Assembly (NCBI GenBank): GCA_964199315.1
Contig: OZ116703.1
Coordinates: 26,040,001 to 26,104,000, forward strand
DNA: 64,000 bases
Origin: Orbicella franksi
Lineage: Eukaryota
Direction of reading: 5' to 3'
The stretch's first letter is position 1; every line of letters begins with the position of its first letter. Shown here in pieces: positions 17,601 through 64,000 of the stretch. The notes beneath the pieces were generated by a model. That model saw nothing but the letters and a program-made list of their open reading frames with translations. It did not search any database and was not told the origin of the DNA. Position numbers and translations under genes: made by a program.

Positions 17601-20600
17601 AAATCAGATGCAGACATAGAACCAATTGGAAGTTGACTGTCTGTCAAATATTGAACTGCTTTACATCGAGGACTGTTTCTATGCCTGCAAGAAAGGCTCC
17701 CATGGTTTCGGTTAATGCTTTATCCTGCCAAACAAGACCTTCCGCAATAACACAACCAAATGTTCTCCTTTGCCTACCTGGTAGACAGATGCATTGATGG
17801 TTTGCACTGTCACATTTTCCATTTCCACTGCAGTCTCTTCCATTAGAACCTGGACATCCAGGCACTTCACATAGGGAGCCTCGCCAACCAGTGAGTTGAT
17901 CACACTGACACTTATTTCCGACACAAATTCCGTGTCCTGTGCACTCCACATTGCATCCGCGACCTGTGAAGCAGTGATCACAGACACAATTTCCACTGTC
18001 CATTGGCACCTGTGTTCCGTTTGTGCAAGGATCTTCACAAGCAGGACCCATCCAGCCAGCTATACAGTTGGTACACGTCGGAGGATTAGAGCTTTCGTTG
18101 CAGAAACCTTGAAAAAATAAACAGACAAAATGAACGAGAATGCAAAAGGATGAAGTCACTATTGTTAGACCTGCTGTGTGAATCCACACCCTATCTGTGT
18201 GTGTCTCTCTGTCGGTCTGCCTTCCTGTCTGTCTTTCAGAAGAAAAAAAGATTCTGACTGTAAAAGGCTATGCTATCTCGCAAGGCTCACTTTTACATGA
18301 GACTACTAACAACAAAATAACAATAATTGTCTCCGACATAATTGAAACGTTCAAAGTTTCCCTATGGTAACGGCCTTTTTGTATCTAATGGTTACAATCT
18401 AACCCTCTTATTGAATTAAAGTAATTTCACCCAATTGACTGCAAAGTACAAAGCAAGCAGCTGTTTCTCAAATACAATACTGGACAAAAAACTCTATGAA
18501 ACTAAATTTCAACTATTTGAATACTTTTACCTCTGTTTGCACAGTCTGGATTTCCAGGACAGTCTGCGATGTGACATCCATCACCTGTCCAGCCATTCTG
18601 GCAGATACATGTATGAAGGGCACTGTTACATTCGCCATGACCCGAACAATCCTCACCATCTCCTGGACATCCGGGATTTTCGCAGAACGTTCCGCGCCAT
18701 CCAACATCACACTGGCACTTGTCATTCACAATCGTTCCATGTTCTGAGCATTCACTGTCGCACCCTACACCCACCCAGCCTGGCTCACAAACGCAGTTAC
18801 CGCTGTCCATTGGAGTCTGTTGACCGTGTACACAAGGATCATTGCATGCTGGTCCCATCCAGCCCTTAGAGCAGTTTTGACACTTAGGGGGATCTACAGA
18901 AGCGTTGCATAGTCCTCGTTCAAAGCAGTTAGGGGATCCTGGACAGTTGGGGATTTCACACCCCTGGCCAGCCCAGCCTTCGTTACATGTGCAAATGTGG
19001 GTGACTGAATTGCAGATTCCGTGGCCTGTGCAGTCGGATCCAATACCAGGACAGCCTGGGTTATCACAGAGGTCTCCTCGCCATCCCACATCACAAATAC
19101 AGCTGTTGTTGACTATTTTACCGTGCTCGGAACATTCACTATCACAACCAACACCTTAAAGAAACCAAAATAGCAATTATTTATTTTGGTAGGTCAGTCC
19201 ATAGAAAATCTATATATCAACCAAATCACACCTATAATCCGCGAAACATCACACCTCAAGTAAAAAGTATCGTAATTACGGTAGTTTTAAAGTTACATAG
19301 TGATAGTACCTGATAGCTTTTCTCTTACCTGAGTATCCTGGCCAACAGACGCACTGTCCACTGTCCATCGGAACTTGTTCTCCATACTTGCATGGGTCAG
19401 CACATGCAGGTCCCATCCAGCCAGGAGTGCAGTTTTGACATTGAGGAGGACTCATAGTAGCATTACAGTACCCGCGGTCATTGCAGTTGGGTGCGCCAGG
19501 GCAGTCTGGAATGTGACAACCGATACCTGCCCACCCGGGGTAGCACGTGCACTCGTGACTGGCGCTATTGCAGTCACCATTACCAGTACAATCTTCACCG
19601 AGGCCAGGACATCCAGGCACTTCGCAAACGTCACCTCGCCAGCCTTTGAGAGGATCACAGTCGCAAATGCCGCTTTCCGAACACGTACCACGACCCATGC
19701 AAAGAGAGTCACAGCCTTTCCCAGCCCAGCAAGGTTCGCATTTGCAAAATCCACTGTCCATTGGTTCTTGAACACCATGAACACAAGGATCATCGCAGGC
19801 TGGGCCCATCCACCCGATGGAGCAGTTAATGCACGTCACGATGGTGCCGTTTATGGTTGCACATGTCCCCCGATTATAACAATCCGGCTCGCCTGGACAG
19901 TCAGGTTGGCTGCAGTCGTCGCCACGCCACCCCGGGTTACAGAAACACGTGAGAAGGGCACTGTTGCATATGCCATTTCCAGAGCAGTCGTTTGGACACT
20001 TGGGAACTTCGCAGTAATCGCCCTTCCATTTACTGTCGCAGATACAGGTATCATTATTGCACGAGCCGTGTCCTGAGCATAAAGAATGGCAATGCGTTCC
20101 AATGAAGCAGGGATTGCATTTGCACTTGCCGCCAATGCAACTACCATTATCCGAACATTCGTACCTACAGTCCTCGCCGGTATAACATGGATCACACACA
20201 CACTTTCCAGTCACGCTGCATCGTCCATTTCCATGACAGTCACGTGTTGCGTTACAGTGATGTTCGCATCGATAACCAACATAGCCGGGATCACAGTCGC
20301 AGCCGCCAAACGCAGCGCACCGTCCGTGTCCAAGACACGTGATTGAGGGATCGCAGTGGTACCCACAGTTCACGCCATAATATCCTGCATCGCACGTGCA
20401 ATTTCTTTGTTGAGCTGAAAATGTTCCGTGTCCACTGCAGTGGTGACCGTCTGAACAAATTTGTCCATTGTATCCGTTGCCAGCACTCCCGTTACCCTTG
20501 GCGCCGCCGGATACATCCCTGTTTCGAATAACGTCCCGCCTTATGTGATCGGGTGAGAAGTGACGAAGGTGTCCCCCTCCACCCCCACCACCATCGTAAT

Positions 20601-26600: not shown

Positions 26601-29600
26601 TGGGCAAAGGAGCAGTTGCCAGGTCGTGTGATGTCGACGTAGGTTCGGTTCTCCGTTATTGCTGTTTGTGCTGATGATGCTATCTTCAGGGTTGCTCCGT
26701 CCTCGAGGAAAAGAAAGTGTACTCCGGTCATCAGGCCATAAAGCTCAGACCGAACCCCATGGACATGGAATTCGGCAGGAAGAACGATCTCAGCTCCCTT
26801 GTCGATGCGATAACTGCATGGCGCTTCAGTTTTGTTTGTTTCAGATTCGACAACCTCCACATAGATAGTTTGGTTAATTCTCAGGTGGAATTGTCCGGTT
26901 TTGTCTCCAATGAACCTATGCGCTATCACTGTAACTTGGGTCTCATTTGGATGGTAAACGATGAGTCGTGAATGTCCAGTTAGCTCAACCTCATCAAACT
27001 CATAATGAGTTGTTCCTTCCTCCATCAGGACAGTGGCTTCAGGTACGTCATGTCCCTCGTTATCTACGTGTAAATATGTGTGATCCACAGCTAGGTAAGT
27101 CGTGTTCGTCTCTTTACTATACTTCAGTATGCGGTACTCAAGTGGACGCACATTTTCTTCCTTGTAAACTGTTCCTGCGGGTGCACCATGGTCGTTCTGC
27201 GTTCCAAATCCACCACGGTCAGTGAATTTGCCACCGTAAGTATACCTCCATCGGCAATGTATTCCTACTCGTCCCCCAGAACCCCCTCCTCCAGCTCCAT
27301 GGTTATAAGAAGACCCGCCGGTGACAGCAATCTCCCCATGTCCGGTCATATTTGTTGTCTTGATAAGAATGCTGCCACCACTGCCACCACCCGCATTTCC
27401 TCCATCTCCTTTGCCACCTTTGGCTGAAATAAGGCCGTTCAACTCAAGACGCTTACCAACTTCCCAGAGAAGCTGTCCTCCTCCACTCCCACCCGTTCCC
27501 CCGCCATTACCACCTCCACTACCAAGAACCAAGGGGCGATAAACTGAACCGTAAGCTTGTCCTCCTTCACGAGCCCCTTTTCCTCCATGACCAGCACCAG
27601 TGCCGATCGCAGTACTTCTTCCGGCACCAGGTCCCTTTTCGGCAGGATTGCCTCCTTCGTCCAAGTTGAAATGACCTTGGCTGTCCAACCAAGCAAATGT
27701 TGAAAATACTTTACCGTGGTTCATGTTCAGTTTCCCTTGATATTTTATTTTTAATTCATCAACATTAATTCTCAAGAATCCTGTGTTTTTACGGAACTCG
27801 ATATCCCCACCTTTCTTAACAATAACGACAGCAAACGAAATATTTCCTGGCTCTGATATTGCAATGTAGTTGTTGTTTTCTATGAGGGCTGTCTGTACCG
27901 TTGAATAGAAATCAGCAGTAGCACCGAACGAAACCAACAAATCCCGAACGCCAACGATCATTCCTTCAAAGATTGACCGAGTGCCATGCATGGAAAATTC
28001 CGATGGTAAAATGATCTCCCCTCCGACGTCGATCCTGTAACTGCAAGGCGCTTCGGTTTTGTTTGTCTCTGACTCTATATACTCTACAAAGATCTTTTGA
28101 TCTCGACGGATGTGAAATTGTCCACTCTTATCACCGATAAATTTATGTACCACAGCAATGACGGTAACATTTCCAGGATGGTAGACCAGAAGACGTGAGT
28201 GACCCGTTAACTCCATTTCGTCAAATTCGTAGTATGTCGTGTTTTCCTCCATCAAAACAGTTGCTCCGGGTACATCGTGGCCATCGTTGTCGATGTGTAC
28301 GTACGTGTGATCGACAGCTAACATGGTAGTGTTCGTTTCTTTCATGTATTTAAGATGACGGTACTCAAGAGGTCTAAAGTTCTCTTCCTTATAAATTGTA
28401 CCGGCAGGACCCCCATATCGGCCCTGCTGACCTCCATGGTCTGTAAACTTACCCCCGTATTTGTATCTCCACCGGCAATGAATTCCGACTCGTCCACCAG
28501 ATCCTCCACTTCCCGAACCGGTTCCAGAACCTCCTGGGACAGAGATTTCACCGTGTCCAGTCATGTTCGTAGTCGTTATTAAGATGCTGCCACCACTACC
28601 TCCCCCGGCATTCGTTCCTGTTCCATCAGTTCCCTTTGAAGACAGCAGCCCGTTGATCTGAAGTCTTTGACCAACGATCCAGAACATCGATCCTCCGCCA
28701 GAACCACCCACTCCTTGGCCATTTCCTCCACCACTGCCATACATCCGAGGAGTGTAAACAGAATCATAAGGGATTCCACCTTCTCCATGATCTGTTTTTC
28801 CACCTTCCCCACCGTGACCAGCCCCAGATCCTACATTGTTTTGGGTTGTACCATGTCCAACACCCTCTTCCGGGCCAAATCCCGTTCCATCCAGGGACAA
28901 GATACCTTCGCTTTCTATCCACGCAAATGCCGAGTAAATGTATCCGTGATTCATTGTCATCAATCCTTCATATTTGATTCTGAACTCGGAGCATCGTAAG
29001 CTCAATGTGTAGTTAAGAATACGGCTGAAAGTCAATTTTGAATTCCTTTCAACAGTTACCGTAGCAAATGAAAAGTTACCTTTCTCGTCTATCTCTACGT
29101 ATCGGCGATTCTCAACTCTGGCAGTTTGAGCAGTAGAAGAGAACTCCACGAACCCTTGACTTGCGATGATCAGATGTTCTACTCCCGTTATTCGTCCTTC
29201 TATAATGCTCCTAGTTCCATAAATGTTGACAACAGCAGGGAAGACAACTTCAGCTCCTTGATCAATCTTGTAACTACACGGTGCGGTGGTCTCATTGGTC
29301 TCCGATTCAACGACTTCCACGTATATTGTTTGGTTCACCCTTGCATGAAATCTTCCTAAGCCATCTCCGAGGAAGCGGTGAATGATGACAGTGACATTAG
29401 GACTTCCTGGAGGATGTTGGACCTGCAGGTTAGCGTGTCTAGTGAGGAACAACTCATCTAATTCATAAAACAAATGTTCACTCTCTAGCATCATTGAAGA
29501 CATCTCAGTTTTGCGATCTTCATTGTCAACTTCCATGTACCTGTGGGTTGCAGTGACGTAAGTCGTATTCGTACTCTTGTCGTACTTCAAGTCCGCATAT

Positions 29601-50600: not shown

Positions 50601-53600
50601 ACATATAATAAACATAAACAACAGCAGTTGATCTACCTGATGATAATCCGGGTCCGCTTCTCGCCGCATAGCCTCGTTTCTCTGCATTAATATTACCAGA
50701 GGCCTCCACCTCAATATCACCAGCACTGATGTTAATCCATTTCCCTTGTATCAGGCCCCCTGCCATCACTCTCAAGCTCTCATTCAGCAACAGGTTGACT
50801 GTAGGTGAGTCTATGACAGTGTCAGCGGCTGTGAGCTTCGCGCCATTCATGACGGTCATGGAGTTTAAGTGGATGGTCTTCTTACTGAAGCCCTCTGTAT
50901 GACCCTAAAAATGGTGGGTAGATCATGGCATTAACTATCAAAGTGTAGCAAGAAAAACAAAATNNNNNNNNNNNNNNNNNNNNNNNNNNNNNNNNNNNNN
51001 NNNNNNNNNNNNNNNNNNNNNNNNNNNNNNNNNNNNNNNNNNNNNNNNNNNNNNNNNNNNNNNNNNNNNNNNNNNNNNNNNNNNNNNNNNNNNNNNNNNN
51101 NNNNNNAATTAATTTTGAGATTTAACGTCCACGTTTTTAACACTTTTTAAGTCGTTGAGTGTTCAAGTACCTGAGCAGTTACTACAAATTCTGCACCTCC
51201 ACCGATGGTCAAGTTATCCATGCCGCTAATCATTCCTTCCAGTGAAATCCTGGGATAAAACAAGTCTTTAAGTAGAACGTCACGAGGCAGATGAATGAAT
51301 CCTCCCTTGTACACGTGGAAACCTGACGGGAAAAGCCTGGGAGCGTAGTTGATGTACACCCTGTCTCTCCCTGACACGTGGATCATACCGCCAAGGTCAC
51401 CTTCAAGTCGCTCTACATTAAGTGTAAACGCAAAGTTATTGAGATGATAGATAGCAAAATGACTTCCACCGCGCAACTGTAACAGATTGATAGTAAACTC
51501 GCCCATGAAACCCGCAAGGAGCCAGGCTCTTCCACCATCGTTGGATATATCTCTGTAATCCGATATATACGGCTTGGTTGCTCGATAGCCATTGTTGTCG
51601 ATAATCATGGTCTTGTGTGTCGAGTTTTTAGCCAGGAAAACCGTTCCAGGACCCCCAGCTTCACTCCGGCTCGCTCCACCGTGAGCTGAGAACGCGCCAC
51701 CGAATCTTGTACTCTCGTAATGCACAGCAATGCGGCCACCAGCTCCTCCACCAGCATCTCCAAACAACGCAGGGGCAACCTCACCACCATCTGCCATTAT
51801 CTTGCCTTTACCAAGAAACAGTGTTGACTGGATAAGGACGCTGCCACCACTTCCTCCACCGGTGCCTGGATTGACAGCTCTCTCTGCTGACACGTCAAGG
51901 AGCCCATCAACTTGAGCAATGTGTGAGGCACTGAGTTTGATGGCTCCACCTCCTGAACTGCCGGGCTAATGACACAAAAACAATGAAACAACGAATCTCG
52001 AAAATCAAGGAGATTTCCAGACTAACTATAGGGTATGCACGTGTACTATAGTGGAGATGTATCACAAATAGTGGTGAGCTAAGTTTCCACGCGTTAGCCC
52101 TGATTTTGTTACAGAAGCACGTTTTAGAACATGTTAACGCTCAAAACATCCGGTGTTATCTAGTAACGTTTTACCAAGTCATGATGAGTAGGTTTGGATC
52201 TGCTCCTAAATGTCTTAACCAATCAGAGTTTTATTTAATCAATTTATTCTTCAGATTGGAAGTCAGTAAATAAGCCATTTCCGAGTTACCCTGTGCCTCT
52301 CTTTCAAAACGAGTCTTCGTGCAAAACCTTTCATATGATAATGAGTTTGATTTACATGGAAATGAACCTGTAGACGGAACACATTTTCTTATGAATGGTT
52401 TCGCACAGACTCGTTTTGACACATAGGAAATGGCCTGTTCAAGATGGATGTCATGATGCAACAACAAACGTCGAAAGAACAGTGGTTATAATAAGCCCGT
52501 GGTTTTCTTTCTATTTCAACTAGAATTGAAGAAGACTCAGTCTTACCAAATCCTGATGCCCTCGTCCTCCACCACTTCCAAAATTGAGTGGCAGGTCAAA
52601 CGAGCCGTACGCCTTGCCAACCAGCGGCTGATTAGAGCTTCTTCCGCCAGCCCCTCCGTGGCCAGCTCCAGAAGCAATAGCAGATTGACGACCTGCACCA
52701 AGACCACTCATCGAGGCAAATCCTCGGCCTCGAGCCGTGAGAACACCACCAATGTCAATGAAGATGTTATGGGACTGCAGATGAACTTGGCTGACATCCA
52801 TTGATGCGCCTGCGTTGATGATAATCTCCCCTGTGAGGTTTACAGTTAATTTTGCAGGCTCAGTGGTCCGCTGGTAAAATTTTCCTCCGTTTAGGATGGT
52901 GATACGATCCAATAGCACGGTTGCTTTCGAGAGAGAGTTGACCTGCGCGTCTTGCGTGACATCAAAGCGACTGTCGTGTGAGATTATGAGGTTTGCAAGT
53001 CCAACCAGCTCCGACTCGGCGTAAATAGACGATTTTTGGAGATACACTTCACGTGGGAGGAAAACTTTTGACCCCTAAAATGATTATAAAAACGATTGGT
53101 TACAACCAACCGTACAGAAAAGAGAGCCGCTCCCAGTTTGCAAATTATAGATATATTTAGAAGGTATTCCATTCACAACAACGCAAATAACGCATAAGAA
53201 CTCAGGGCAGGAAAAAACCCGGGTCCGATTGCCCGGGTCAAGTTAATTTTGCTCGTGCCCAAGTGAAAATAGAAGCTCAGTGGCCCAGTGAGCTCCAGTG
53301 GGGAAAGTGAAATTCGCCTCAGTAGTCTTGTGAGTCTGAATAAAAATGTCAAATCAGAAGCTGTTTCAAAACTTAAGACTGCTAGATTAGTAAACCATTA
53401 GGTTGAAAGCATGGATTACTTAGGAATCCACCACATCGCCAAATAACATTTAAGTGGGGGCAAGTGGTCGGGCAAGTGAAAAATGAAATTTACTGGTCCA
53501 CTGGTCAAGTAGATTTCTATTTTTCTTTCTGCCCTGAGAACTTGATGTCCCTTTTCTTATACTTGAAAATGACACCTTTTTTGTCAAGGCGCCTGTCAAC

Positions 53601-56600
53601 TCCAGAAGAGGAAGGGAACTTAGGGGACCTAAAGGGGACATGCTGTTTTATAAGGGATGAACACACTAATTTTTATAAATGTCAAAGAAAACATGAAAAC
53701 AACGGTTTTCCACGCAGTGGAAAAGCACCAAAGAAGACGATGAAGGTGGTTAAGATTGAGGATGTTTTAGACGGATTACAAATCACGAGCTTGGGAAGTA
53801 TAGCCTGTGTTTCACGACTCGCGCCCCGGCCCAAACAGGAGATGCTCCTCGTAAGCTAGCGAACGTACTTGTTAGGCAAGACAGAAAATCTGATATAGTT
53901 CCTATAAGATGACCTGAAAGAAGCCGGCGCCAAATAAGCAATACACATATGGCTTAAAATAACCAAACAAACAGAAAATGTCATACGAGTTACGTGAAAT
54001 AAACTTTCACCTGGTACGTTCTCAGTGTGAAAGGAATCACCGAGTTGGCGCTAGCGTTCAGAAAGACACTCTGTGCTCCACCCACTTGAAGTGTAGCAGT
54101 AAAATCTCCCTTGTACTCATTCACCAAGAGCTCTACACTACCAGCTTTGTTCTGAACGCCGAGGTGAGCGTGTCCGCGGATATCTAGCTCGTCAACTTCG
54201 AATGTCGTTAGTCTGGGATCGTTGAACACCAGCCACGTCCTCGAGCTGTCTTGTTCGAGAGTGGTCGCATGAAAAGACGAGGTTTCGCGTCCGACGAAGA
54301 CCTTAACCTCGCTCAAGGCAACGTGGGATTCAAGCCGCGTCAAGGTTAATGTAAACTCCGAAATGGTGTCTTCCATGAATACATCATTGTAAACAGAAGT
54401 ATCATAACAGCCTGCAAATGATCTGGGACCTTTGGTTCCCAGGGTAGCGTGCTTTGCAGTCAGCTGGAAACTGACGCGGTAGTCTTGATGACAATACTGA
54501 AAGGAAACAAATAAAGTAAGTCGGTCTCAACGGGACTGTATATCCTTCAGTCAGATACTGAACTCTTAAATGTAGTATAACAATTATCTTTCTGAGTGGG
54601 AAGGGAGTAAGGCTGAATGTTGTTAATTTTTTGGCGAATAACTTCGTAAATGTCTCTTCTACTACGTTGGAAGTAAAATAGTGTCGTAGTAGATACTCTG
54701 AAACGATTTTAACTTTTACAAGAATGTGCACTCCCAAGGTAATCAACCTACAAACGCTGTTCATAACTTAAATTGTTTTCAGAATAAATGAGAACTAAGT
54801 TTCTACCTTGGGCATGTTTTAGCTAGTTCTTTCTTAGCCTCGGCTTTCTTATTAACAGAAAAATGCTCGTTGTAAAAAGGTAGCGCAACTTCCTTGATTG
54901 ATTGTCAAATATTTTCTCTACATATCAACAAAATATCTCCTTTACTTTCTAAACAATGGTTTGATGATGTCTGAAATTATATTGTCAATCAAACGTAGAA
55001 GTTAAGGAATAAAAGCAAATAACAGAGAGCAATATAACGCGAAAAGCCTTAAAAGGTAAACAAAATTGCTAAGGACAGAGGAGTGTTTATTTTTTTCTCC
55101 AGCTTCTCAGCGGCCCGGAATCCAAAATCCTTGAATCTGATAAGCTAATCGCCCGCGCTCCTGCGGTCTAGATTTTCCCATCCGGACCCTGGTTACGGAT
55201 CGCTCCGAGATTTCCAGCTTTGGAAACTTTTCAAGCCTTTTGTTAAAACGTAAAACAACGTAAAATATAAACAGTCAACACAGAGTCAAAAAACACGTTA
55301 TTTGCCGACCTTGGTCGGTCCACAATGGGAAAAGCTGTGCCCTCGGGTCGTACTCAAGATCTCGGGTACAGATTTTTCCATACGGACTTTCCGGCCGGTA
55401 AAATAACATGTATGTACTACATACGGGATAAATTCTTATGTGATGAATGAACATGTTCCTTGGTAGGCTGACAGTGATCACCACATTCGTGTAGGAAGAT
55501 GTCACTATGTAAGCATTCTTAAGATTTCCGTCACACAGCCGTGACAGGGAGTAGTAATGAGGGTTAGGGTTGGACCCCTCATGGTAGGACTGCGTGACGC
55601 CACTGGATGAAAGCCTCAGTCCGCTTATGCTGGTGTAGACCGTCGAGTAGCTATGTAACATAGATCCTGGATAAAGTTTTATCTCTTCAACCTGTAGTAT
55701 AAGAAAAAAATCTATCAGGTTGTAGAATCATGAGTTGCAAGAGGCAATATGAAGACTCCTTAATATTTGGCCGCTTAATTAGCGTTTCTCCCTAATAGTA
55801 CAGTGAAGATAAATAAATAAATAAATAAAACAAACAAATATACATTTATATAGCGCCAATTTCCACTAATTGTCCATGGCGCTTTACAATACTCTAAAAT
55901 TAAAATCCTAAGTTTAAAATCCTAAAATTAAAATCCTAATCCAAATCAAATGCACGCTTAAAAAGATAAGTCTTAAGATTAGCCTTAAAAACTGCCTCTG
56001 ATGATGAAAGTCTGATCTGGAGGGATAGTGGGTTCCAGAGCCTTGGTGCCGCCACGAAAAAAGCACTTTCACCATACGTTTTAAGATTTGCTCTAGGCTC
56101 ATCAAGCAACCTGTTGTTTGAAGATCTTGTAGGACCGACCAGATGTGACCCCGCTCCTACCCTCCCCTTGCTCTTTTGACGGGAAGAACGGAAAAGGAAG
56201 CCTACCCTTAAGGCAATCATTGCGTTAGCCTTTTACACTGAAGAAAGGACAACGTGTTTTAGCTCATTATTTTCTGCTTGCTCCGTAAGACGAACGTGTG
56301 AAACGTCGATGAGTAAGTTATTCGCTGGTTATCCAAAAACGGCGGTTAATTCACCAAGGGTAGGGGCCAAAACCCGTAGGAATTTAAGCACACCTTTACA
56401 CGCCAATCCTATCATCGACATGATCAACAACACAAAACCAAAATTACTCTCTTAGAAGTCAACACGAACATGGCGAGTTAAACCATTGCGTCAACGCAAC
56501 GATATCTTTTTCAGAATACCTGCCAAGTTCTCAAGCTGATGTGTGGAAAAAGTAATAACGCACTTAAAGAAGCATACGTCACGGTTTGCACATCTTAAAA

Positions 56601-59600
56601 AATTTAGCCTGAATTTTTCAAGATACTCGTTTGTAATTCGTGTTACTCTTCTCCATCCTTAACCCTCCTTGTTTCTTTATGGTTTATTATTATCTCTTTG
56701 GTATTTTTCTATCCTTAGTGAACTACTCTTTTCAGGTTTCATTTAATTTAAAGGTAATTTTATACGTGGCCAAAATAACTTAACAAAAACGTGAGTGAGC
56801 TCTTCTAAAATAATACTAAAAATCGTTGTGTACCTGATTGATTCGTTCAGTGAGCGGTGAGCGACCCTTGTTATCCACCTTCAGTGTTCGATATGGACGA
56901 TCAGAATTATTCCTTGCTTTTTCCACGTACACAGTTCCAGCTGCACCATTCTCTACGTCACCAATCCCGCCAGCAGCTTCTAAGAAGCCATCAAAGAATC
57001 CTCCCTGGTAGTACAAGGCGACTCTGCCACCAGCGCCACCTCCCCCTCCTCTAGATGGGTCTCTATATCCACTGCCACCATTTGCCTGCAGTAGAAAAAC
57101 AAACAGCACTTTAGTGTATACAAAAACACACCGCTACCATGGACACATCTAATGTGAAAATAAGACGTGCACACAATAACATACAATAGAGCGGTTTTCA
57201 ATTGAGTGTCGAAAGTAATCGGACAATTACTTTGGTTTTGGTATTTGTTTTAAATACGGTCTGAGACTGGCTGAGTAGGTTAGTAATTAGTTTGGTTTTG
57301 GTTTTACGACACCCAGTTGAGAACCATTCTACCAGACATGAATAAAACAAAGCTCACTTTTCCCACAATACTTTTCAGACAAATTTTCTATGGTCATATG
57401 ATTTAATCTTATCTTGCATAGAGAGCCGTTACACTCCGCTCGTTCTTATCACTTTTTAATATGTAGTCGTAAGGCACCAACGCTATATTACAATTAGATA
57501 CTTGAGATCACCGTTCACCGCAAACGACAAACTGCTAGGGGTCAGGTGACCAGAGCCAGACGTCAGGTATTTCGAGTCCAAGACACTGACAACAGATTTA
57601 ATCGTTATAAGGTTTAGATGATTCAACGTAACAGAAACAACCAAAACAATTTTTCATGTTACAAAAGCCTTCTCAGTTTCCGTATTGTAAACACGCCCGG
57701 CCACATAAATATTTCAGTTACACAGCCTGTGATAACTTAGAACAAAAACCGGTTAAGTTTGCAGTCGAGGATATAATTAAGTGGCGCCACTAATTATGCA
57801 CAACATTGCTTCCAATTGCAAGTGACTTGCTCAGGCTTGCTCAGGTTTGAATAGCTAATTGAACTAACCTGCACAGTCCCACTTCCTTCCAATGTAACAG
57901 TTCTAATAAGAATACTTCCACCACTACCTCCCCCAGCGTATGAACCAACATAGTTGTCGCCATCAGCACTCAGCGTTCCCTCTATGTCCAATGTGTCGCT
58001 GATGTTGAGGAATAAAATACCACCACCTCGGCCTCCGTGCCCACCACCGCTTCCCTTGCCACCACTGCTGCCTGTTGATCAAACATCACCATTAATCAGT
58101 TTACTCGATTAATTAACGATTTTCATGATACCCACACGAAGGTTATCACAATCATAACGACACTAATGGTGCCATAAGCCAATCAGAGCTTGACGTAACA
58201 ACATATACCCGCCGATAAGCGCAGGAAAATGGATGACAGGCGGCAAGCACGGGAAATCTGGTAACCAGCGGCAAGCACGGGAAAATATGGAACCGGCGGC
58301 ACGGGCAAGAAAATAAGTAAACCAGTGGCAAGCGCAAGAAAATATAAAACTATCGGAAAACAAACGCGGTAAGTAAGGAAATGAACGTAGCCGGCGGTTA
58401 GTGCGAGAAGACGTGTAATGGCGACAAAGGCGGGAAACCTCGTGTAATTTAAATTATGATCTTCGAATGTTGTTTGAAAATGACTCGAAGAGAATAACAT
58501 CAATCGTTTGGACGTAAAAGGGACATTGATTGCAGTCACTTGGCCAAGAATAAGAAAGATCTACTTTCTTCTTACAAAAGTGATATATTTCAAGCGGAGG
58601 AACCAAGAATAAAGAAAATCATCGACACGTCGCTAACACGCTAAACAGAAATCTGAACAACCCCAAAGTTAAGCTACTAAGCTCATGTGAAACATCACTC
58701 AAACTCACCAAAGTCATTGGGTTGTTTTAGTGACCCATATGAAGCTCCCGTGGTCACTTGACTCGCAGCACGTCCGCCCAGTCCCCCGTGACCTCCACCT
58801 GATCCTCCGGCAAAGCCTGGGGACGGAGAGTTTGCACCAGGACCCTTACCTGTAAAGTTAATCGCGACAATCAAAATAATTAGAAAGATACCTAAGTTGC
58901 CAAAGATGAGCCGCCAGCCCGTAAGTAACACTTAGCTCTGTTTTTTTGCCGTGGCTTGAGGCAACTAGTTCATCACAAGTAACCCTACCACCCCTCCCTG
59001 GTCGCTGAGAATTATGACTTTTATGACACGTTCATCAGAAATTATCTCTGTTCACTTGCTACCTACAGCGATTTTGGCGAAGTCGTCAACTATATGTTAG
59101 AACGTTTTCTCAAAAGAGCATTTCCTACAATAATAGCCAAGCGCGCGAATGACGTTATAATTCAGACAAACTCAGACAAACAAAACGGAATGGTGGAAGA
59201 TTTGAAGCTCTTCCAAGCGCGTAAACAAGTGTTCCTAAAACAATTTTTAAAATGAAAATTTGGCGTTCATTTTCCTCCTATTTCTCTCAGAACACTCTTA
59301 TGATGTCTGACTCTCACGAGGTTCCAATAATTTACATTTTATTTTTAGACTTCGCGCGCTTCGTCATTAAGTCACGACAGGAAAACAGGACACGAAAAGA
59401 GTACGAGCTTGGTTAGGGTCAAGAGATGAAAGATTACCCGCTAAAGAGAGCTTTTCATATAAAGGCAACATAATACATTTCGATACAATACCAGATTACT
59501 AGACCGAAGTAAACATACCATCGTAAACAAAGCTCTGTCCCTTTAAAGTTGCATGGACGGTAGCTAAAGCATCGATGGTAAAATTCAGGACGTGCACATG

Positions 59601-62600
59601 AAGATTAACTGCTGTAAACGTTCCTCCGCCGAACACATGCATAGATGTCCCACGGAATTCACGAACTCTTTCCTGATTGGTCACCGTCATGGTGCCCTTG
59701 TTTCGAACGCTGATTGACTCGAAATAAAAGGTCTAGAAATGAACGATAAATCACATGTTAGTAACAGTGTATATTGCTATTGGTCTGTAACCGAAGTAGA
59801 TAACTAAATACGCTTCACTGTGCAGTACAACATTTCCTTAACACCCCAAATAAGCTCGGTGAGTTCGGTTCTTATTTAGGAACCCCTTTATAGCGACCAC
59901 CCAATTAACACGAGCAGACTTTGGCGATTTTAATACATACTTCCTACTCAAGATTCATAGTTGCTGGACTCATGAACTAACCAATCAGAGAAAACTGTTT
60001 TTTTATGTAAAATCAACTTCTAATTCAATTACTAATAAGGGGCATTGGTATACTGATGTCGGCCTGTTGGTGTAATTGAATCACTTTCTCAAACCTTTGT
60101 AACCTTTTAACGCGTTTACAATCAGTTCGCAAGCATTTTTGTTGCCAAAAGCCAAAAAAACATCTTAAAAGCCTGATAAATCTTAAGAAGTTGTTATGTG
60201 AAGGATCATTGTAACGGCATCAAGGGCTACACATTTCACTTACCTTGGTCGGCTTTCCCTCTGTATCATACATCTCCTTCATTCGAATAAGACCATCATC
60301 AACTACTGTAATGTTCTGGCATCTTCTCAAAACACCATCAACCTCGACAGTAACCCCGGCAACAAGCAGTTCTCCCTGCATTGCTGTTAACCCCCCCTGG
60401 TAAATGATCATGTCCATGGGGAGGTACGACTGGAGGGAGAGGAAAGTCTGGTTGTAGCCCAAATGGATTCTCCCGGTTCTATCTCCTTCCATTTGACCAA
60501 TCACGATTGAGATATGCGCTTTGGTGCTTGTCGGATTTATGATGGCTAGCTGCGCTCCACCGTAAAGTTGCAACTCGTCCAGTTCAACATCAGTTCCGTT
60601 TGTTTCCAGATCCTCATCATCCAATGTGAGCCACGCCCTGCTTGATCCACCGTGACTGAAGTCACTGTAGCTTGCGCCAAGATTGGCGTCGGGAATTAAA
60701 GGTTTTCGACCCAGCCCGTTTAGGTACAAAGTTCTGTTTCGAGTCCACCGTGTCCCGTTGATAACGTCTTCATCCAGAATTATTCTTTCCGCGTGTGCTG
60801 CTTCGTCGATACGGTCGTGCCCATAGGTAGCGTTCATTCCGGGCACATTCTCTAGAAACACTGTACCTGGACCACCGGGTTCGTACGGACTGGTGCCCCC
60901 TGCACCGAGAAACCGACCCAGGAAGTGGTTCTCGCGATAGTACAAGCAAACACGACCACCCCCACCTCCACCTCCGTAATACCCGGTTGAGCTGTCCCCG
61001 TCGCCACCGGAGACGTCAAATTCTCCGTCGCCATGTAATCTTGATGTGTACGCTAGAATACTCCCTCCACTTCCACCGCCGCTGCGAGAAGCCCGTGCAG
61101 CTCCCCCTTTAGAGGATAATACTCCATCAACTACTAACGTATCGTGAGCAATGATTTTAAACCGGCCTCCACCTAATCCGCCTGTGAACGGAAAAGCCTC
61201 GGCTCCGCCCGTGCTTCCAAATGTCGTGGGTCTTCTGTACTTCCCGTATGAGACACCGACCTTTGACTGGCCTTTACCCAGCCCTCCGTGACCGCCATGC
61301 CCTGCACCAGAGGAGCCGGAGACACCACCCCACCCGTCTCCATAGTAACGTAATCCGGGAATTTCATCAACAAGGCTATCACCTGAGAGGTAAGCGAAGG
61401 GTTCCACAGTGATGTTCACGTAGTCTAAAGTGAGACTATTTGCCTCCATCTGAGAAAAATCAAAATAGAATAGATTAATACGCACAACTCTTCAGTCTTG
61501 GTAAAACGTCTAATAACGACTTGGAGTTTTCGTCCCAAGCCCGTGTGCACCTTTTCTTCCGGAAACCTAAGACCTTCGACCACCTCTTCAAAACGACCAG
61601 TTAATCGTTCTTAGGTTCTCCACAGCAGATACGTTTAACTGCGCATGCTAGGATCACTACGAGTCAACAATAAAATGGAAAGTACAATTATGTTTGGAGC
61701 AAAGCATACTTGTTACCCATGGCGTGGAGTACACGCACGACTTTGAAAATAAACTAGACGAAAAGGAGGATTGTTATCATTGTTAAACCAAGTTCTTGCA
61801 ATGAGGAAAGTTTCAATATCTCGACTCTATTTCATAGTAATAGCTTATGTATCAAGGCTAATGATGCGTATAAAAATGTAATGGCATATAAACGATAGTC
61901 CCCATGCCATTTAGCGCGAAAATATAATATGCTCGGATATTTGTCCCTGGACATTACAATTATCTGCTCTGAGAAGCGAGCAGTTTTCCGAGAGAATATC
62001 TTGAGGAAAAATATAAGCTTTGAGAAACAGATGATGTCCAAGGACAAATATTTATCCGAGCATATTTTTGCGCTGAATGGAGGCTATTGTGTCAATTATC
62101 CTTCAAAACGTTTTCGCAACACGGTCAGTTTTGAAAGTGGGGAATATCACTCGGAGATTCCCCAGTTTTAGCTGGGGCATATTCAGTTACGTGAAGCGTT
62201 TGAACCATGAGGCTACCGCGCCTCCACACGAAGTGAGTGTGAGGAGCATTAAAAATGTGTTCTTTGAGATTGAAAATTATAGACGGTAAACCAATGTGGA
62301 AATCAGGTAATTTGTACAAGCTAACTACTTCATTAAAGCTATAGCAATGTCTAAGGTGTTTTATACATTAGATGTTCTGATCTGTTCATACACTCATTGT
62401 TCTGGTCTGTTTATACATTAGCTGCTTCAATCCTAGGTGTCGCCTTGTTTATTTTCTATTCCAAATTGTCAGATGGCTCTGAATTATCGGCAGGGAAATT
62501 GAAAAATGACTCGAAATCCATTACGTGGTCTTTTGCATCTGTTTCAGAAGGGATCCTCGTGCAAACAAAAACGAGTGTGATTTGAATGAAGACAGACGTT

Positions 62601-63613
62601 CAAATGAAACATGTTCTCATATGAATGGTTTCGGACGAAGACCTTTAAATACAGAGGCAATAGGCATCTTTCGACAGTATGCTCATCAGAAACAGTAAGA
62701 TCTACAGAGATGAATTCGTCAAACAAGACAATAGGCCATTTTACAGAGGCAAGCGAGGCTGGAGGTGACCTTGCTTTAATACAGACCTCTCTGCTTTTCC
62801 ATTTAAATGCCAACTTATTAGCATTAGAACAACTTGATTTACACAACAAAAGCAGTGAGGTCTTTATCAAAACAAGGTTACCTGCAGCCTCGCTGCCATT
62901 CAAAGGCCAGGGGCCCGTTTCTCGAAAGTGGCGGAAACTTTTCGGGTCCGCAAAGCCCATTTTGGATAATCTCTATCTAAAAACCGAGAGGTATACACGC
63001 CCGAAACTCCTCGTATGAAGAGAACCTCTGTTCATATTAATAATACGTGAATAAAACAGCTCTGTAATCATAGGGTTTGAGGTTTTGCTACAGCTTTCCG
63101 GGTGCGAAAACTTTTCGGGACCTTCGAGAAACGGGCCTCAGGTCACTGAACAGACAACTGTTAAATGTTCTATTCAATGTACAATCTACTGACCTTAGCT
63201 CCCCCTCTAATGTCAAACGTTTTTCCAATCATCCGCACATCTTGTCTGTCTTCTCTGGTAGCCGCCATGTAACCGTCCGTCTGCACAACCACGTGATCTA
63301 AGGCGAATTCCGTTTCAGTGGAGTTCTCAAGAATAAACCGACACTGCGGTCCAACAGTAAGATTCGTCATTTCTCCCATCACACCTCGCATCGCTACCTC
63401 GACTCCACGACAGTTCATACTGCTGGGAAAGGTCACATTGGAACCTTTTTGTGACAGGAGCGAGAATGGAAGGTGTCCCTCCGAGCCCCTCATATGGACG
63501 GTCTGGGTGGGGCGCACGGTTAGGATACCACTGCTGTCGCCAACAATTTTGTCCACGCTCATTTTCACGTTATTCCCAGATATCGACAGGCTTCCTTGGC
63601 CCATAATTTGCAG
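1..63613 (-). CDS. Giant multi-exon extracellular protein, partial at both ends (35 exons, 43,357 nt, >=14,452 aa): Gly-rich/beta-solenoid repeats + tenascin-type EGF array + repeated VWD-LamG-C8-EGF modules
   Basis: All long minus-strand ORFs end at GT donors and resume after pyrimidine-tract AG acceptors. Every junction is phase-compatible and repeat motifs continue across junctions (e.g. GGAK|MEANS, YS G|VGC, FIV R|LQDS). The summed exon length is 14,452 codons + 1 nt, matching the phase at the window edge. Confidence 0.93.
8814..11826 (-). CDS. exon 34 (3013 nt, 0/1), EGF-VWD1-LamG1-C8-EGF-VWD2-LamG2(start)
   Basis: ttctctag|ATATCT ... TCTACAG|gtaaga; VWD motifs (ITLDG, GLWGNCN), LamG/pentraxin motifs (WNHIALVW, FIGQIDEVRIW, LWKLNEGDG). 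Confidence 0.95.
11930..12215. mobile_element. degenerate MITE-like element (TAGAGCGGTTTTCAATTGAG terminus family), intron 33
   Basis: left end tagaacggttttcatttgagtatcgaaagtaat is nearly the same as 57187; degenerate inverted right end ttttacaaccctc...aaaacgcttta. Confidence 0.6.
12458..12587 (-). CDS. exon 33 (130 nt, 2/0), not in ORF track
   Basis: cttcacacag|ATTGCA ... AACAAT|gtaagt; reads RLQDSYPIAWIVAFPVSNERNAAVVDSSMVHSMRCTDSEAQMNN and is the phase bridge needed between exons 32 and 34. Confidence 0.85.
13062..15351 (-). CDS. exon 32 (2290 nt, 1/2), EGF repeats plus start of a non-EGF domain
   Basis: ttgcacag|GGATTG ... GTAAG|gtacga. Confidence 0.92.
16107..17273 (-). CDS. exon 31 (1167 nt, 1/1), EGF repeats
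   Basis: tttttag|GTTGGA ... TGGAGTG|gtaagc. Confidence 0.93.
17778..18107 (-). CDS. exon 30 (330 nt, 1/1), EGF repeats
   Basis: tttcaag|GTTTCT ... CTACCAG|gtaggc. Confidence 0.92.
18531..19154 (-). CDS. exon 29 (624 nt, 1/1), EGF repeats
   Basis: ctttaag|GTGTTG ... AACAGAG|gtaaaa. Confidence 0.93.
19329..20894 (-). CDS. exon 28 (1566 nt, 1/1), last Gly-rich unit U then start of EGF array
   Basis: ttttgcag|GTGGTA ... TACTCAG|gtaaga; switch from Gly runs to C-x-C..GW.G..C repeats near 20470. Confidence 0.93.
21399..22068 (-). CDS. exon 27 (670 nt, 0/1)
   Basis: ctttaag|GTTTCT ... ACTGCAG|gtacga. Confidence 0.87.
22775..23070 (-). CDS. exon 26 (296 nt, 1/0), unit T
   Basis: atttcag|GTCCCA ... 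AAAGAG|gtgagc. Confidence 0.9.
23606..24013 (-). CDS. exon 25 (408 nt, 1/1)
   Basis: ttatcag|GCGGTC ... CACGGAG|gtctgt. Confidence 0.88.
24626..25369 (-). CDS. exon 24 (744 nt, 1/1), unit S
   Basis: tttttag|GTAAAT (GKFRSVGG..AAGTVYK) ... AAAAAAG|gtgggt. Confidence 0.88.
25773..26015 (-). CDS. exon 23 (243 nt, 1/1)
   Basis: ttttcag|GCGGAG ... TTTGGTG|gtacgt. Confidence 0.9.
26230..30879 (-). CDS. exon 22 (4650 nt, 1/1), units O-R and start of S
   Basis: gtgacag|GTTTTA ... GGCGCAG|gtgagt; lies within the 1597-aa ORF. Confidence 0.95.
31190..31539. mobile_element. MITE (350 bp) with perfect 17-bp TIR and 3-bp flanking duplication CAT, intron 21
   Basis: GGTTGTTTACCATTTAC at 31190 and GTAAATGGTAAACAACC ending at 31539; cat at 31187-31189 and 31540-31542. 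Confidence 0.88.
31778..32030 (-). CDS. exon 21 (253 nt, 0/1), unit O
   Basis: gtcgtag|ATTACA ... GGCACAG|gtgagt. Confidence 0.9.
32797..33540 (-). CDS. exon 20 (744 nt, 0/0)
   Basis: tttgcag|GCTGTG ... ACTAAG|gtaaat. Confidence 0.9.
33786..34195 (-). CDS. exon 19 (410 nt, 1/0), unit N
   Basis: tctacag|GTAGCG ... GGAGAC|gtaagt. Confidence 0.88.
34412..34787 (-). CDS. exon 18 (376 nt, 0/1)
   Basis: atacgcag|GATATC ... AATTCAG|gtgagg. Confidence 0.88.
35564..36582 (-). CDS. exon 17 (1019 nt, 1/0), unit M
   Basis: ttttccag|GCCACA ... CTTTTG|gtatgt. Confidence 0.92.
36802..36979. mobile_element. Tc1/mariner-pogo-like MITE (CAGT...ACTG termini), intron 16
   Basis: cagttgaacccggctatttcgaactc ... 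gagttcgaatattttagggggctccaactg followed by TA; left TA appears mutated to TG. Confidence 0.65.
37083..38048 (-). CDS. exon 16 (966 nt, 1/1), unit L
   Basis: ccttaaag|GTTATG ... GGAAAAG|gtaagg. Confidence 0.92.
38339..45777 (-). CDS. exon 15 (7439 nt, 2/1), units F-K and start of L
   Basis: ttgactag|GGGCGAG ... TTCATTG|gtaagt; lies within the 2543-aa ORF. Confidence 0.95.
45969..47482 (-). CDS. exon 14 (1514 nt, 0/2), unit E and start of F
   Basis: ttttcag|GCTACA ... CTTCAAG|gtaaga. Confidence 0.93.
47910..48135 (-). CDS. exon 13 (226 nt, 2/0)
   Basis: ttttttag|GCAGCT ... TATAAG|gtaaga. Confidence 0.9.
48484..49381 (-). CDS. exon 12 (898 nt, 1/2), unit D
   Basis: cccgttag|GCTCTG (GSAGAGHGG) ... 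ATTCTCAG|gtaagc. Confidence 0.9.
50637..50904 (-). CDS. exon 11 (268 nt, 0/1)
   Basis: tttttag|GGTCAT ... TCATCAG|gtagat. Confidence 0.88.
50964..51106. other. assembly gap (143 N) inside intron 10
   Basis: run of n characters; flanking exons join in phase 0, so no exon is required in the gap. Confidence 0.99.
51171..51965 (-). CDS. exon 10 (795 nt, 0/0), unit C
   Basis: gtcattag|CCCGGC ... GCTCAG|gtactt. Confidence 0.9.
52269..52439. mobile_element. palindromic MITE (AATAGGCCATTT terminus family), intron 9
   Basis: aataagccatttcc / ggaaatggcctgtt (12/14 inverted match); internal inverted arms caaaacgagtcttcgtgcaaaacc vs ggtttcgcacagactcgttttg; a degenerate relative of the core lies near 62545-62660. 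Confidence 0.75.
52547..53074 (-). CDS. exon 9 (528 nt, 0/0)
   Basis: ttttag|GGGTCA ... GATTTG|gtaaga; GAGHGG, YGSFDLPLNFGSGGG. Confidence 0.9.
53203..53536. mobile_element. MITE with CAGGGCAG...CTGCCCTG termini (hAT-like ends), intron 8
   Basis: 8-bp perfect inverted termini; direct repeat AGAACT abuts both ends (53197-53202, 53537-53542). Confidence 0.75.
54011..54496 (-). CDS. exon 8 (486 nt, 0/0), end of inserted domain and resumption of unit B
   Basis: tttcag|TATTGT (YCHQ) ... TACCAG|gtgaaa; ALSEVKVF then DSSRTWL, VDELDIRGHA. Confidence 0.88.
55296..55409. mobile_element. short palindromic MITE-like element, intron 7
   Basis: gttatttgccgacc ... ggccggtaaaataac imperfect inverted ends; internal arms aaaagctgtgccctcg / ctcgggtacagattttt. 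Confidence 0.6.
55425..55691 (-). CDS. exon 7 (267 nt, 0/0), N-terminal part of an inserted discoidin/F5-8C-like domain
   Basis: tactacag|GTTGAA (VEEIKLYPG) ... TATCCC|gtatgt; LCDGN and IHHIRIYP motifs. Confidence 0.8.
55810..56130 (-). mobile_element. 5'-truncated non-LTR retrotransposon 3' end (L2/CR1-group LINE), intron 6
   Basis: translation PRANLKTYGESAFFVAAPRLWNPL...FKANLKTYLF* matches the typical C-terminus of L2/CR1-type ORF2; followed by a 3' stem AGCGCCA/TGGCGCT (55852-55883) and a (TTTA)n tail. Confidence 0.88.
56834..57085 (-). CDS. exon 6 (252 nt, 0/0)
   Basis: actgcag|GCAAAT ... AATCAG|gtacac; GGRVALYY, AAGTVYVE, LKVDN. Confidence 0.9.
57187..57331. mobile_element. MITE (TAGAGCGGTTTTCAATTGAGTGTCG TIR), intron 5
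   Basis: 25-bp imperfect TIR (20/25 by eye) with cgacacccagttgagaaccattcta; same family as 11930-12215. Confidence 0.75.
57869..58071 (-). CDS. exon 5 (203 nt, 1/0)
   Basis: tcaacag|GCAGCA ... GTGCAG|gttagt; GGGSGGSILI motif. Confidence 0.9.
58214..58345. repeat. degenerate minisatellite-like array (about 5 copies of [G/C]GGCAAGCACGGGAAAA-like motif, 25-30 bp spacing), intron 4
   Basis: ataagcgcaggaaaa, ggcaagcacgggaaa (x2), ggcacgggcaagaaaa, ggcaagcgcaagaaaa. Confidence 0.7.
58709..58849 (-). CDS. exon 4 (141 nt, 1/1)
   Basis: tttacag|GTAAGG (GKGPG..GGGHGG..YGS) ... GACTTTG|gtgagt. Confidence 0.9.
59139..59361. repeat. 11-bp perfect inverted repeat pair bounding 223 bp, possible MITE remnant, intron 3
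   Basis: aagcgcgcgaa (59139) and ttcgcgcgctt (59351); no clear target duplication. Confidence 0.4.
59519..59732 (-). CDS. exon 3 (214 nt, 0/1)
   Basis: atttctag|ACCTTT (TFYFESISV) ... TACGATG|gtatgt. Confidence 0.88.
60244..61449 (-). CDS. exon 2 (1206 nt, 0/0), Gly-rich unit A
   Basis: ttctcag|ATGGAG ... ACCAAG|gtaagt; contains GAGHGG, GGGSGGSIL, GGRV, GPGTVF, LDELQLYGGA. Confidence 0.93.
61890..62092. mobile_element. long-hairpin (foldback) MITE-like element, intron 1
   Basis: arm catttagcgcgaaaat..atgctcggatatttgtccctggacatt pairs with atgtccaaggacaaatat..tccgagcatatttttgcgctgaatg. Confidence 0.72.
62730..63174. mobile_element. palindromic MITE (AATAGGCCATTTTACAG terminus) interrupted by a nested insertion, intron 1
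   Basis: aataggccattttacag / ctgttaaatgttctatt (14/17 inverted match); internal hairpin gaggctggaggtgaccttg..ctctgctttt vs aaaagcagtgag..caaggttacctgcagcctc. Confidence 0.78.
62911..63138. mobile_element. PIF/Harbinger-like MITE (228 bp) with CAG target duplication, nested in the 62730-63174 element
   Basis: gggcccgtttctcgaa / ttcgagaaacgggcct TIRs (15/16); cag at 62908-62910 and 63139-63141. Confidence 0.85.
63194..63613 (-). CDS. exon 1 in window (420 nt, phase 0/0), second half of a Gly-rich/solenoid unit
   Basis: acceptor tgttaag|CTGCAA (LQIMG); donor GCTAAG|gtcagt. An upstream exon is required but lies outside the window. Confidence 0.85.
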
Positions 63614-64000
63614 CTTAACAGAGACAATGGACAAAAACACATTACCAAAAAACAAACTAGTGAGAAACGAGCATAGGCATAGACTGAGGGAAATTACGGC
63701 AACAACGGATGAAATAATAATCGGTTTAATCAAACATTAGTGTCAACTGGTTCTCGAGCAATCAGGCCAGAGTGTTAAAAAGAGGTTTTGTCACGCGAGA
63801 AGATACTTCGACACATAACGGCAATGGAATGCGACATGCGACTTCAAAAACTATACAGGAGCAGTCGTAAGTACATACCTGTTTAAACTTATTACCCAGG
63901 GATTGGAACTCATTTACATTTAAGTAAAATATTTCAATGCAGTTAACTGCATGTTAACAAGAAGAACGCAAGTGTTTCTTAGGTCAGTACCATAGTCAGT

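Follow-up and report, generated by a model that had tools for sequence, protein, structure and literature searches.

The question raised by this locus is what fold is taken by a long series of protein units in which short glycine runs are separated by hydrophobic strands. The locus lies in a 64,000-nucleotide stretch of Orbicella franksi DNA (assembly GCA_964199315.1, contig OZ116703.1, positions 26,040,001 to 26,104,000), which was analysed whole and is called the window here. An initial annotation, made from the letters alone, had proposed about 21 tandem units of about 400 amino acids (aa) at 20470-63613, each combining a polyglycine-II (PGII) helix bundle with a beta-solenoid. In the present analysis the models predict with high confidence that each ~400-aa unit folds as one right-handed parallel beta-helix rich in glycine. 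The units would follow each other in a nearly continuous rod that serves as a spacer in the matrix, as part of a giant secreted protein. A probability of about 65% is given to this full explanation.

The minus strand of the window shows long open stretches interrupted by short closed ones, a eukaryotic pattern. A single period of the 1597-codon exon served to build a profile hidden Markov model (HMM), which was then iterated over the stop-to-stop translations of this strand. The unit profile matched 45 exon pieces, which make up 21 consecutive units running from 63616 down to 20590 (Table 1), and within each of the 21 units the matched positions follow one another in sequence from 1 to 393. 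Both the extent of the array and the number and length of the units in the initial annotation were thus borne out. With some 300 bases between the start of unit 1 and the end of the window, the count of 21 is a minimum. Units 8-11 and 16-18 lie whole within two giant exons, and each of the remaining units contains between one and four introns. Pairwise identity among the seven whole single-exon units is 27-55%. Tandem Repeats Finder detected no tandem array in the window DNA. Therefore, the duplications are old and the repeat is visible only in the protein.

In these seven units, and also in an alignment of 128 rows composed of the units of this gene and their relatives, glycine makes up nearly all of the columns that vary little or not at all. 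Every unit carries six to eight conserved glycine runs of 5-15 residues each. The motifs appear in the order GPGxG, GxGAGHGGxGG, GSGGG, GGxGGG, GGGSGGS, GxGxIxxxGG, GGSGGR and AGTxY, and loose regular expressions for them match most of the 21 units, so that the fixed order described at first was confirmed. The alternating strand segments with G/D/N turns were also found; they cover about 215 aa and are placed before the glycine part.

An AlphaFold2 model of unit 17 was obtained from the 128-row alignment, with a mean predicted local distance difference test score (pLDDT) of 93.7 and a predicted template modelling score (pTM) of 0.89. A second model comprised units 17 and 18 (821 aa) and used a 48-row alignment of tandem pairs; its pLDDT was 91.6 and its pTM 0.83. 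DSSP analysis of both models gave about 30 short strands per unit in regular succession, stacked in rungs as in a right-handed parallel beta-helix. In unit 17, residues 24-215 form about nine rungs with three short strands each. Residues 284-386 form 3.5 rungs of 31-34 aa, in each of which a glycine stretch of 16-17 residues accompanies one long and one short strand. Two more rung-lengths, with isolated bridges only and at a pLDDT of 97-98, are provided by residues 216-283. The same pLDDT of 97-98 was reached in the Gly half in two independent runs, and DSSP labels the glycine runs '-'. The modelling of one and two units thus gave confidently ordered glycine runs and a beta-helix topology, not a globular domain. 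The unit model superposes on solved right-handed parallel beta-helices over most of the domain. The structural matches are headed by the HMW1 TPS domain (18.8), EtpA (16.8), Tapirin (13.6) and MpAFP (13.3), and Ag43, TibA, UpaB, VacA p55, tailspikes and lyases stand lower in the same list.

The junction of units was assessed in the two-unit model. The linker between units 17 and 18 is structured, with a pLDDT of 73-76 and strands at 396-399, 404-407 and 411-417. Since the pTM of 0.83 refers to two domains, their mutual orientation is defined in the model. The long passenger rods align over both units (Hbp 2..792, Pet 1..805, Ag43 14..795), and one depolymerase helix passes through the unit junction (335..798, root-mean-square deviation (rmsd) 3.8 Å). 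On the basis of the models, the first ~215 residues of each unit would form about nine ordinary three-stranded rungs of ~21 aa. In the last ~170 residues the rungs would be wide (31-34 aa) and about five in number, following the consensus GG(G)SGG[S/R]-I-x-I ... G-x-G-x-I-x-A-x-GG-x-G. The conserved glycines would serve as tight turns and as one glycine-only face stacking in register between rungs. A structured linker of ~45 aa would join the units, and 21 of them would give one nearly continuous rod. The rise of a beta-helix is 4.8 Å per rung. With ~13-16 rungs, each unit would measure 6-8 nm and the 21 units ~130-160 nm. The stiff fibre of possibly more than 100 nm suggested at the outset is supported, at the level of prediction, by the two-unit model and the passenger-rod alignments.

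A single exon at 19279-20913 (minus strand) completes unit 21 and also encodes a DSL-like piece and the first EGF repeats of teneurin type. Because the end of unit 21 and the EGF repeats share one exon, the beta-helix array and the EGF/LamG/VWD part belong to one protein. Further EGF arrays, a DSL-like piece, LamG and VWD domains follow 3' of the first EGF repeats. A 2,890-codon frame with VWD, LamG and EGF modules (8671..2, minus strand) is still open at the low end of the window; therefore, the 3' end of the gene lies outside it. The bulk of this huge gene is contained in the window. The modules and the open frame leaving the window put the protein above ~14,000 aa. This domain set fits a multimerising matrix or mucus protein, which is presumably secreted. 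In a comparison with an orthologous exon of a different assembly, to which identity is 79%, the ratio of nonsynonymous to synonymous substitution rates (dN/dS) is 0.117, and 385 of the 409 glycines (94%) are kept between these orthologues. The 2,550-codon exon has orthologues, all of ~2,500 aa, in some 45 other assemblies, with identities from 94% down to 36%. Therefore, the gene is real and constrained, and it is under purifying selection. The rod would be the N-terminal part of the protein, and the C-terminal EGF, LamG and VWD modules would supply binding and disulfide-linked multimerisation. The role of the rod would be mechanical, as a stiff spacer or fibre in the extracellular matrix, mucus or coat of a marine invertebrate. 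A passive stiff spacer is favoured because almost only glycine is conserved, the best structural matches are adhesin stalks, and the C-terminal modules are of binding and multimerising kinds.

Several points weigh against the rod explanation. The structural evidence is entirely prediction, and Protein Data Bank (PDB) searches with the 7-row and 128-row profiles returned no solved structure that is a sequence relative, only Gly/Ser low-complexity linker artefacts. The Foldseek template modelling (TM) scores to solved beta-helices are low (0.2-0.3), though the matches are of the same kind. Therefore, the rung geometry is unusual. Residues 216-283 are nearly strand-free, so 'beta-helix' would describe their topology and not their hydrogen bonding. 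The pTM of 0.83 suggests a fixed junction and is no measure of stiffness. Finally, no signal peptide was seen within the window, the N-terminus of the protein lying beyond it.

Three other explanations were weighed. The units could be working carbohydrate-binding or -cleaving beta-helices of the pectate lyase, tailspike depolymerase or CEMIP/TMEM2 type, but this function is considered improbable. Lyases, epimerases and depolymerases are frequent among the structural neighbours, but adhesin stalks, not enzymes, match best. A G8 domain, known from the hyaluronan-related CEMIP family, stands directly before the Gly module in bacterial relatives, whereas the window units have no G8 HMM match. The only conserved polar residues are one Arg, one Thr and one Asp, all within structural motifs, and no candidate active site was found in the conservation pattern of the window units and the 128 relatives. 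In addition, it would be unusual for an enzyme domain to be repeated 21 times in tandem.

The strict form of the earlier model, in which a discrete PGII helix bundle of the ALK/LTK glycine-rich domain, gp38 or snow-flea antifreeze protein type alternates with a separate beta-solenoid, is quite unlikely. It would account for the six to eight glycine runs of each unit and for residues 216-283, which are predicted with confidence to be ordered and contain hardly any strand or helix. A GP38 cluster was returned by a protein-language-model search, at a score of 0.70 only. However, the Pfam families Gly_rich (PF12810) and GP38 (PF05268) were unmatched at E<=10 in the seven units and at E<=0.1 in the 128 relatives, and the PDB sequence searches returned only low-complexity linkers. 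No such bundle appeared among the matches from Foldseek PDB, the VIA-wide top 50, the Swiss-Prot part of the AlphaFold database (AFDB), which gave nothing significant, and BFVD. The Foldseek comparison put forward in the initial annotation gave solved beta-helices as matches (TM 0.2-0.3), with neither the ALK glycine-rich domain nor gp38 among them. With the whole unit or the unit pair, rather than the Gly half alone, as the query, no fold match to ALK, LTK, gp38, the snow-flea antifreeze protein or Obg was obtained, which is a weak negative since secondary-structure aligners may miss PGII lattices.

The course of the chain also bears on this question. In the models the Gly half itself aligns as beta-helix rungs, and in both each glycine run follows the previous one after 31-34 residues, an interval that contains two beta strands. 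Therefore, the runs are parallel and in register, one set per rung. They share one position per rung (...GSGAGHGGEGG / ...GSGGGNGQGVGGSGGGS / ...GTNAGGGSGGS / ...GGSGTGSGSGGSGGR / ...GGQQGRYGGPAGT). In contrast, the helices of known PGII bundles are mostly antiparallel and hairpin-linked by short turns (10.1101/2023.11.25.568672; PMC9436101). The solenoid fold and the ordered glycine runs of the earlier model are thus retained, and the discrete bundle is given up because the solenoid includes the Gly half. The spacing of a PGII lattice, 4.8 Å, equals the rung rise of a beta-helix. Therefore, a parallel PGII-like face is possible. The glycine stretches are confidently ordered, must be extended to close the rung with an 11-12-residue strand, and are called no strand by DSSP. 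The Gly half might be a hybrid beta-solenoid of a previously undescribed architecture, with one or two faces of parallel in-register PGII-type stacks, residues 216-283 (two rungs) being almost wholly so; we put this forward tentatively and with some doubt. If the hybrid reading is true, the family would represent a new fold class with PGII elements, the first in which these run parallel, with 21 repeats in one animal protein. A more prosaic alternative to the PGII face is a set of RTX-like tight turns that have lost the Ca-binding Asp.

A third possibility, that small beta modules are joined by glycine runs acting as flexible or elastomeric linkers and that repeat covariation has produced the confident model as an artefact, is very hard to believe: Gly-rich sequences are often disordered and AlphaFold2 can over-regularise repeats, but the glycines are retained between the 79%-identical orthologues (dN/dS 0.12), their positions are invariant in the 128 relatives from bacteria to animals, the Gly half is confidently predicted in two independent runs, and ESM Atlas relatives, predicted by another method, have the same fold at TM 0.77-0.86.

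The breadth of the family was determined with the unit profile. At E<=1e-3 it matches 11,890 representative proteins, of which 3,430 also reach E<=1e-30; they are spread over bacteria, giant viruses, plants, oomycetes and animals. Most of the matches cover the Gly half only (profile ~180-390), with 4-14 copies per protein. Giant surface proteins of prokaryotes commonly carry the Gly module as a stalk element. The family is matched by no Pfam or NCBIfam model, whether single units, the 128 relatives or the N-halves alone were searched, and the units gave no match to Beta_helix/PbH1 or adhesin-repeat families. The named homologues are annotated as 'uncharacterized' or 'hypothetical' (Saccoglossus XP_077861759.1, Ptychodera XP_070533134.1, Paramuricea CAB4006520/1, Actinostola QZH41_003345); they come from hemichordates (Saccoglossus, Ptychodera) and anthozoans (Paramuricea, Actinostola). 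Literature on DUF8003, on PGII plus beta-helix and on G8 plus beta-helix yielded no description of the family.

Relatives were also found by fold. The AFDB fold clusters contain bacterial proteins, the plant protein F4JV81 and plant, oomycete and dinoflagellate 'ephrin-receptor-like' proteins. In the ESM Atlas, mollusc clusters match the unit at TM 0.86. A bacterial cluster there, with G8 in 39% of its members, superposes at TM 0.77 and an rmsd of 3.5 Å over residues 1-393, and a 245-aa bacterial protein corresponds to the Gly half alone (rmsd 1.7 Å). In BFVD only giant-virus 'collagen-like' and PA14 proteins match, and gp38 does not. These BFVD matches (Bathycoccus, Ostreococcus, Pandoravirus and Orpheovirus proteins) have Foldseek E values of 1e-5 to 4e-4. 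The 'collagen' label on some giant-virus proteins may be a Gly-richness artefact for the unit fold.

The G8 domain (PF10162) is weakly matched in three of the 128 relatives (best E 2.8e-4). In the bacterial proteins P0238, P0227 and P0248 it ends 10-15 aa before the Gly module or overlaps it. This arrangement suggests that the unit is a G8-like start plus a Gly module. No G8 HMM match at E<=10 was present in the seven window N-halves or in two animal homologues, and hhalign of the animal N-half against the bacterial N-parts gave a probability of 6%; the window N-halves are therefore not classed as G8. Some prokaryotic relatives (metagenome proteins P0204-P0206 and P0242) join the Gly module to peptidase C14 (PF00656, caspase-like) and PF24595, and others carry it with DUF2341, LamG_3, Big_2/3 or Rhs/YD repeats.

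Unit 4 contains a run of N (Table 1). The splice sites flanking the gap are canonical, with a CAG|GT donor at the exon end 51171 and an AG|G acceptor at the exon start 50904, which is preceded by a pyrimidine tract and AG. Both exon boundaries are in phase 0, and the profile positions pass from 136 to 153 across the gap. Introns at the same place were found in unit 2 (140 to 156) and unit 5 (132 to 149). Because of these same-phase splice sites, the resumed profile positions and the matching introns, the gap is intronic and the reading frame continuous. It is possible that the collapse of a whole number of units inside the gap would escape notice.

Other observations were made along the array. 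The insert of the irregular unit 7 (~44600-44930) contains several Cys (CPHGY..., NPCG..., IACDY..., QSCS...) and many NxS/T sequons, and Pfam gave no match to it. By the unit map, 54290-55691 (minus strand) falls between units 2 and 3. The Saccoglossus homologue P0007 carries F5_F8_type_C at 256-386; at 54290-55691 no discoidin (F5/8C) domain was found by Pfam on three open segments or by phmmer with the Saccoglossus F5/8C region. The 2,550-codon exon, which extends from the end of unit 6 to unit 12, stays single in the ~45 assemblies (L001:10001-17506 among the loci) and is an unusually stable giant exon.

Table 1. Positions of the units and of the downstream part of the gene in the window.
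Feature	Position	Strand	Composition
Unit 1	60844..63616	-	exons 63269-63616 and 60844-61455; profile 29-153 and 192-387
Unit 2	56906..60609	-	five exons; unit profile
Unit 3	51615..54250	-	three exons; unit profile
Unit 4	48924..51500	-	three exons; intron 50905-51170 contains N gap 50964-51106
Unit 5	46961..48863	-	three exons; unit profile
Unit 6	45510..46783	-	two exons; unit profile
Unit 7, irregular	43980..45461	-	profile 13-195, ~100-aa Cys-containing insert, profile 124-393
Units 8-11, whole	39306..43979	-	in 2550-codon exon: 43979-42822, 42821-41640, 41639-40458, 40457-39306
Units 12-15, intron-split	31779..39305	-	39305-37855, 37845-36125, 36115-33936, 33564-31779
Units 16-18, whole	27077..30763	-	in 1597-codon exon; unit profile
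Unit 17	28304-29539	-	modelled alone
Units 17 and 18	27077-29539	-	modelled as a pair
Units 19-21	20590..27076	-	27076-25269, 25211-22904, 22897-20590; last exon continues into first EGF repeats
Remainder of gene, beyond the unit array	2..20589	-	teneurin/tenascin-type EGF arrays, DSL-like, LamG and VWD modules

The family thus comprises ~12,000 representative proteins without a curated model, and this gene defines its 400-aa two-part unit, of which the Gly module of ~190 aa also occurs alone. If the rod explanation is true, a rod that is assembled from 21 units, exceeds 100 nm and heads an animal EGF/LamG/VWD protein would be an unusual stiff extracellular fibre. The glycine face is a good test case for PGII-type packing in a solenoid and can be of interest for protein design.

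The units can be compared with several known systems. The PGII bundles (ALK/LTK, the gp38 PGII sandwich, the snow-flea antifreeze protein, the Obg N-domain and the predicted PE_PGRS sandwich) have, like the window units, several conserved glycine runs per domain that are ordered and, in the model, neither helix nor strand. The searches gave no sequence or fold match to them, and the glycine runs of the window are interleaved with beta strands, unlike those of the antiparallel hairpin-connected bundles. The RTX beta-roll repeat GGxGxDxUx has the same spacing as GGSGGS-ILI and GGSGGR-VGI of the window, with Ser or Arg replacing the Ca-binding Asp. Membership in this group was rejected, as the consensus is GGSGG[S/R], the rungs have 31-34 aa versus 18, and no RTX family matched. 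A DUF8003 (PF26010) cluster is among the nearest ESM Atlas neighbours; the units and the 128 relatives gave no Pfam DUF8003 match. The N-terminal domain of Myxococcus AgmC (NF047640) was matched only by bacterial relatives, far below the cut-off. The plant glycine-rich proteins of the F4JV81 type (F4JV81 has 1,432 aa) belong to the same Foldseek fold cluster (E 2e-9, TM 0.55), with ~18% identity. We take F4JV81 to be At4g32920, and its Arabidopsis paralogue AT5G11700, presumably of the same family, to be PELEUS. PELEUS is reported to be vacuole-localised and to act in Arabidopsis male meiosis (10.1101/2024.12.03.626687). This is the sole lead on function for the family. A vacuolar protein differs from the giant extracellular EGF/VWD protein of the window and has little bearing on the animal function. 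A further known system is the bacterial multi-repeat surface proteins in which G8 precedes the Gly module (Lentisphaerota, Verrucomicrobiota and others). Their Gly half is clearly homologous to that of the window (E down to 1e-30 and below), and they share the two-part order of the unit, an N-part followed by the Gly module.

Beta-helix rods are the classic stalks of bacterial adhesins. The adhesin stalks (the TPS proteins HMW1, EtpA and FHA; the autotransporter passengers Ag43, pertactin and Hbp) have no sequence relation to the window units. Their rungs have ~19-25 aa, whereas those of the Gly half have 31-34 aa and a glycine-only face. The adhesin stalk is one uninterrupted helix; in contrast, the window protein would carry 21 separately capped units in an animal secreted matrix protein.
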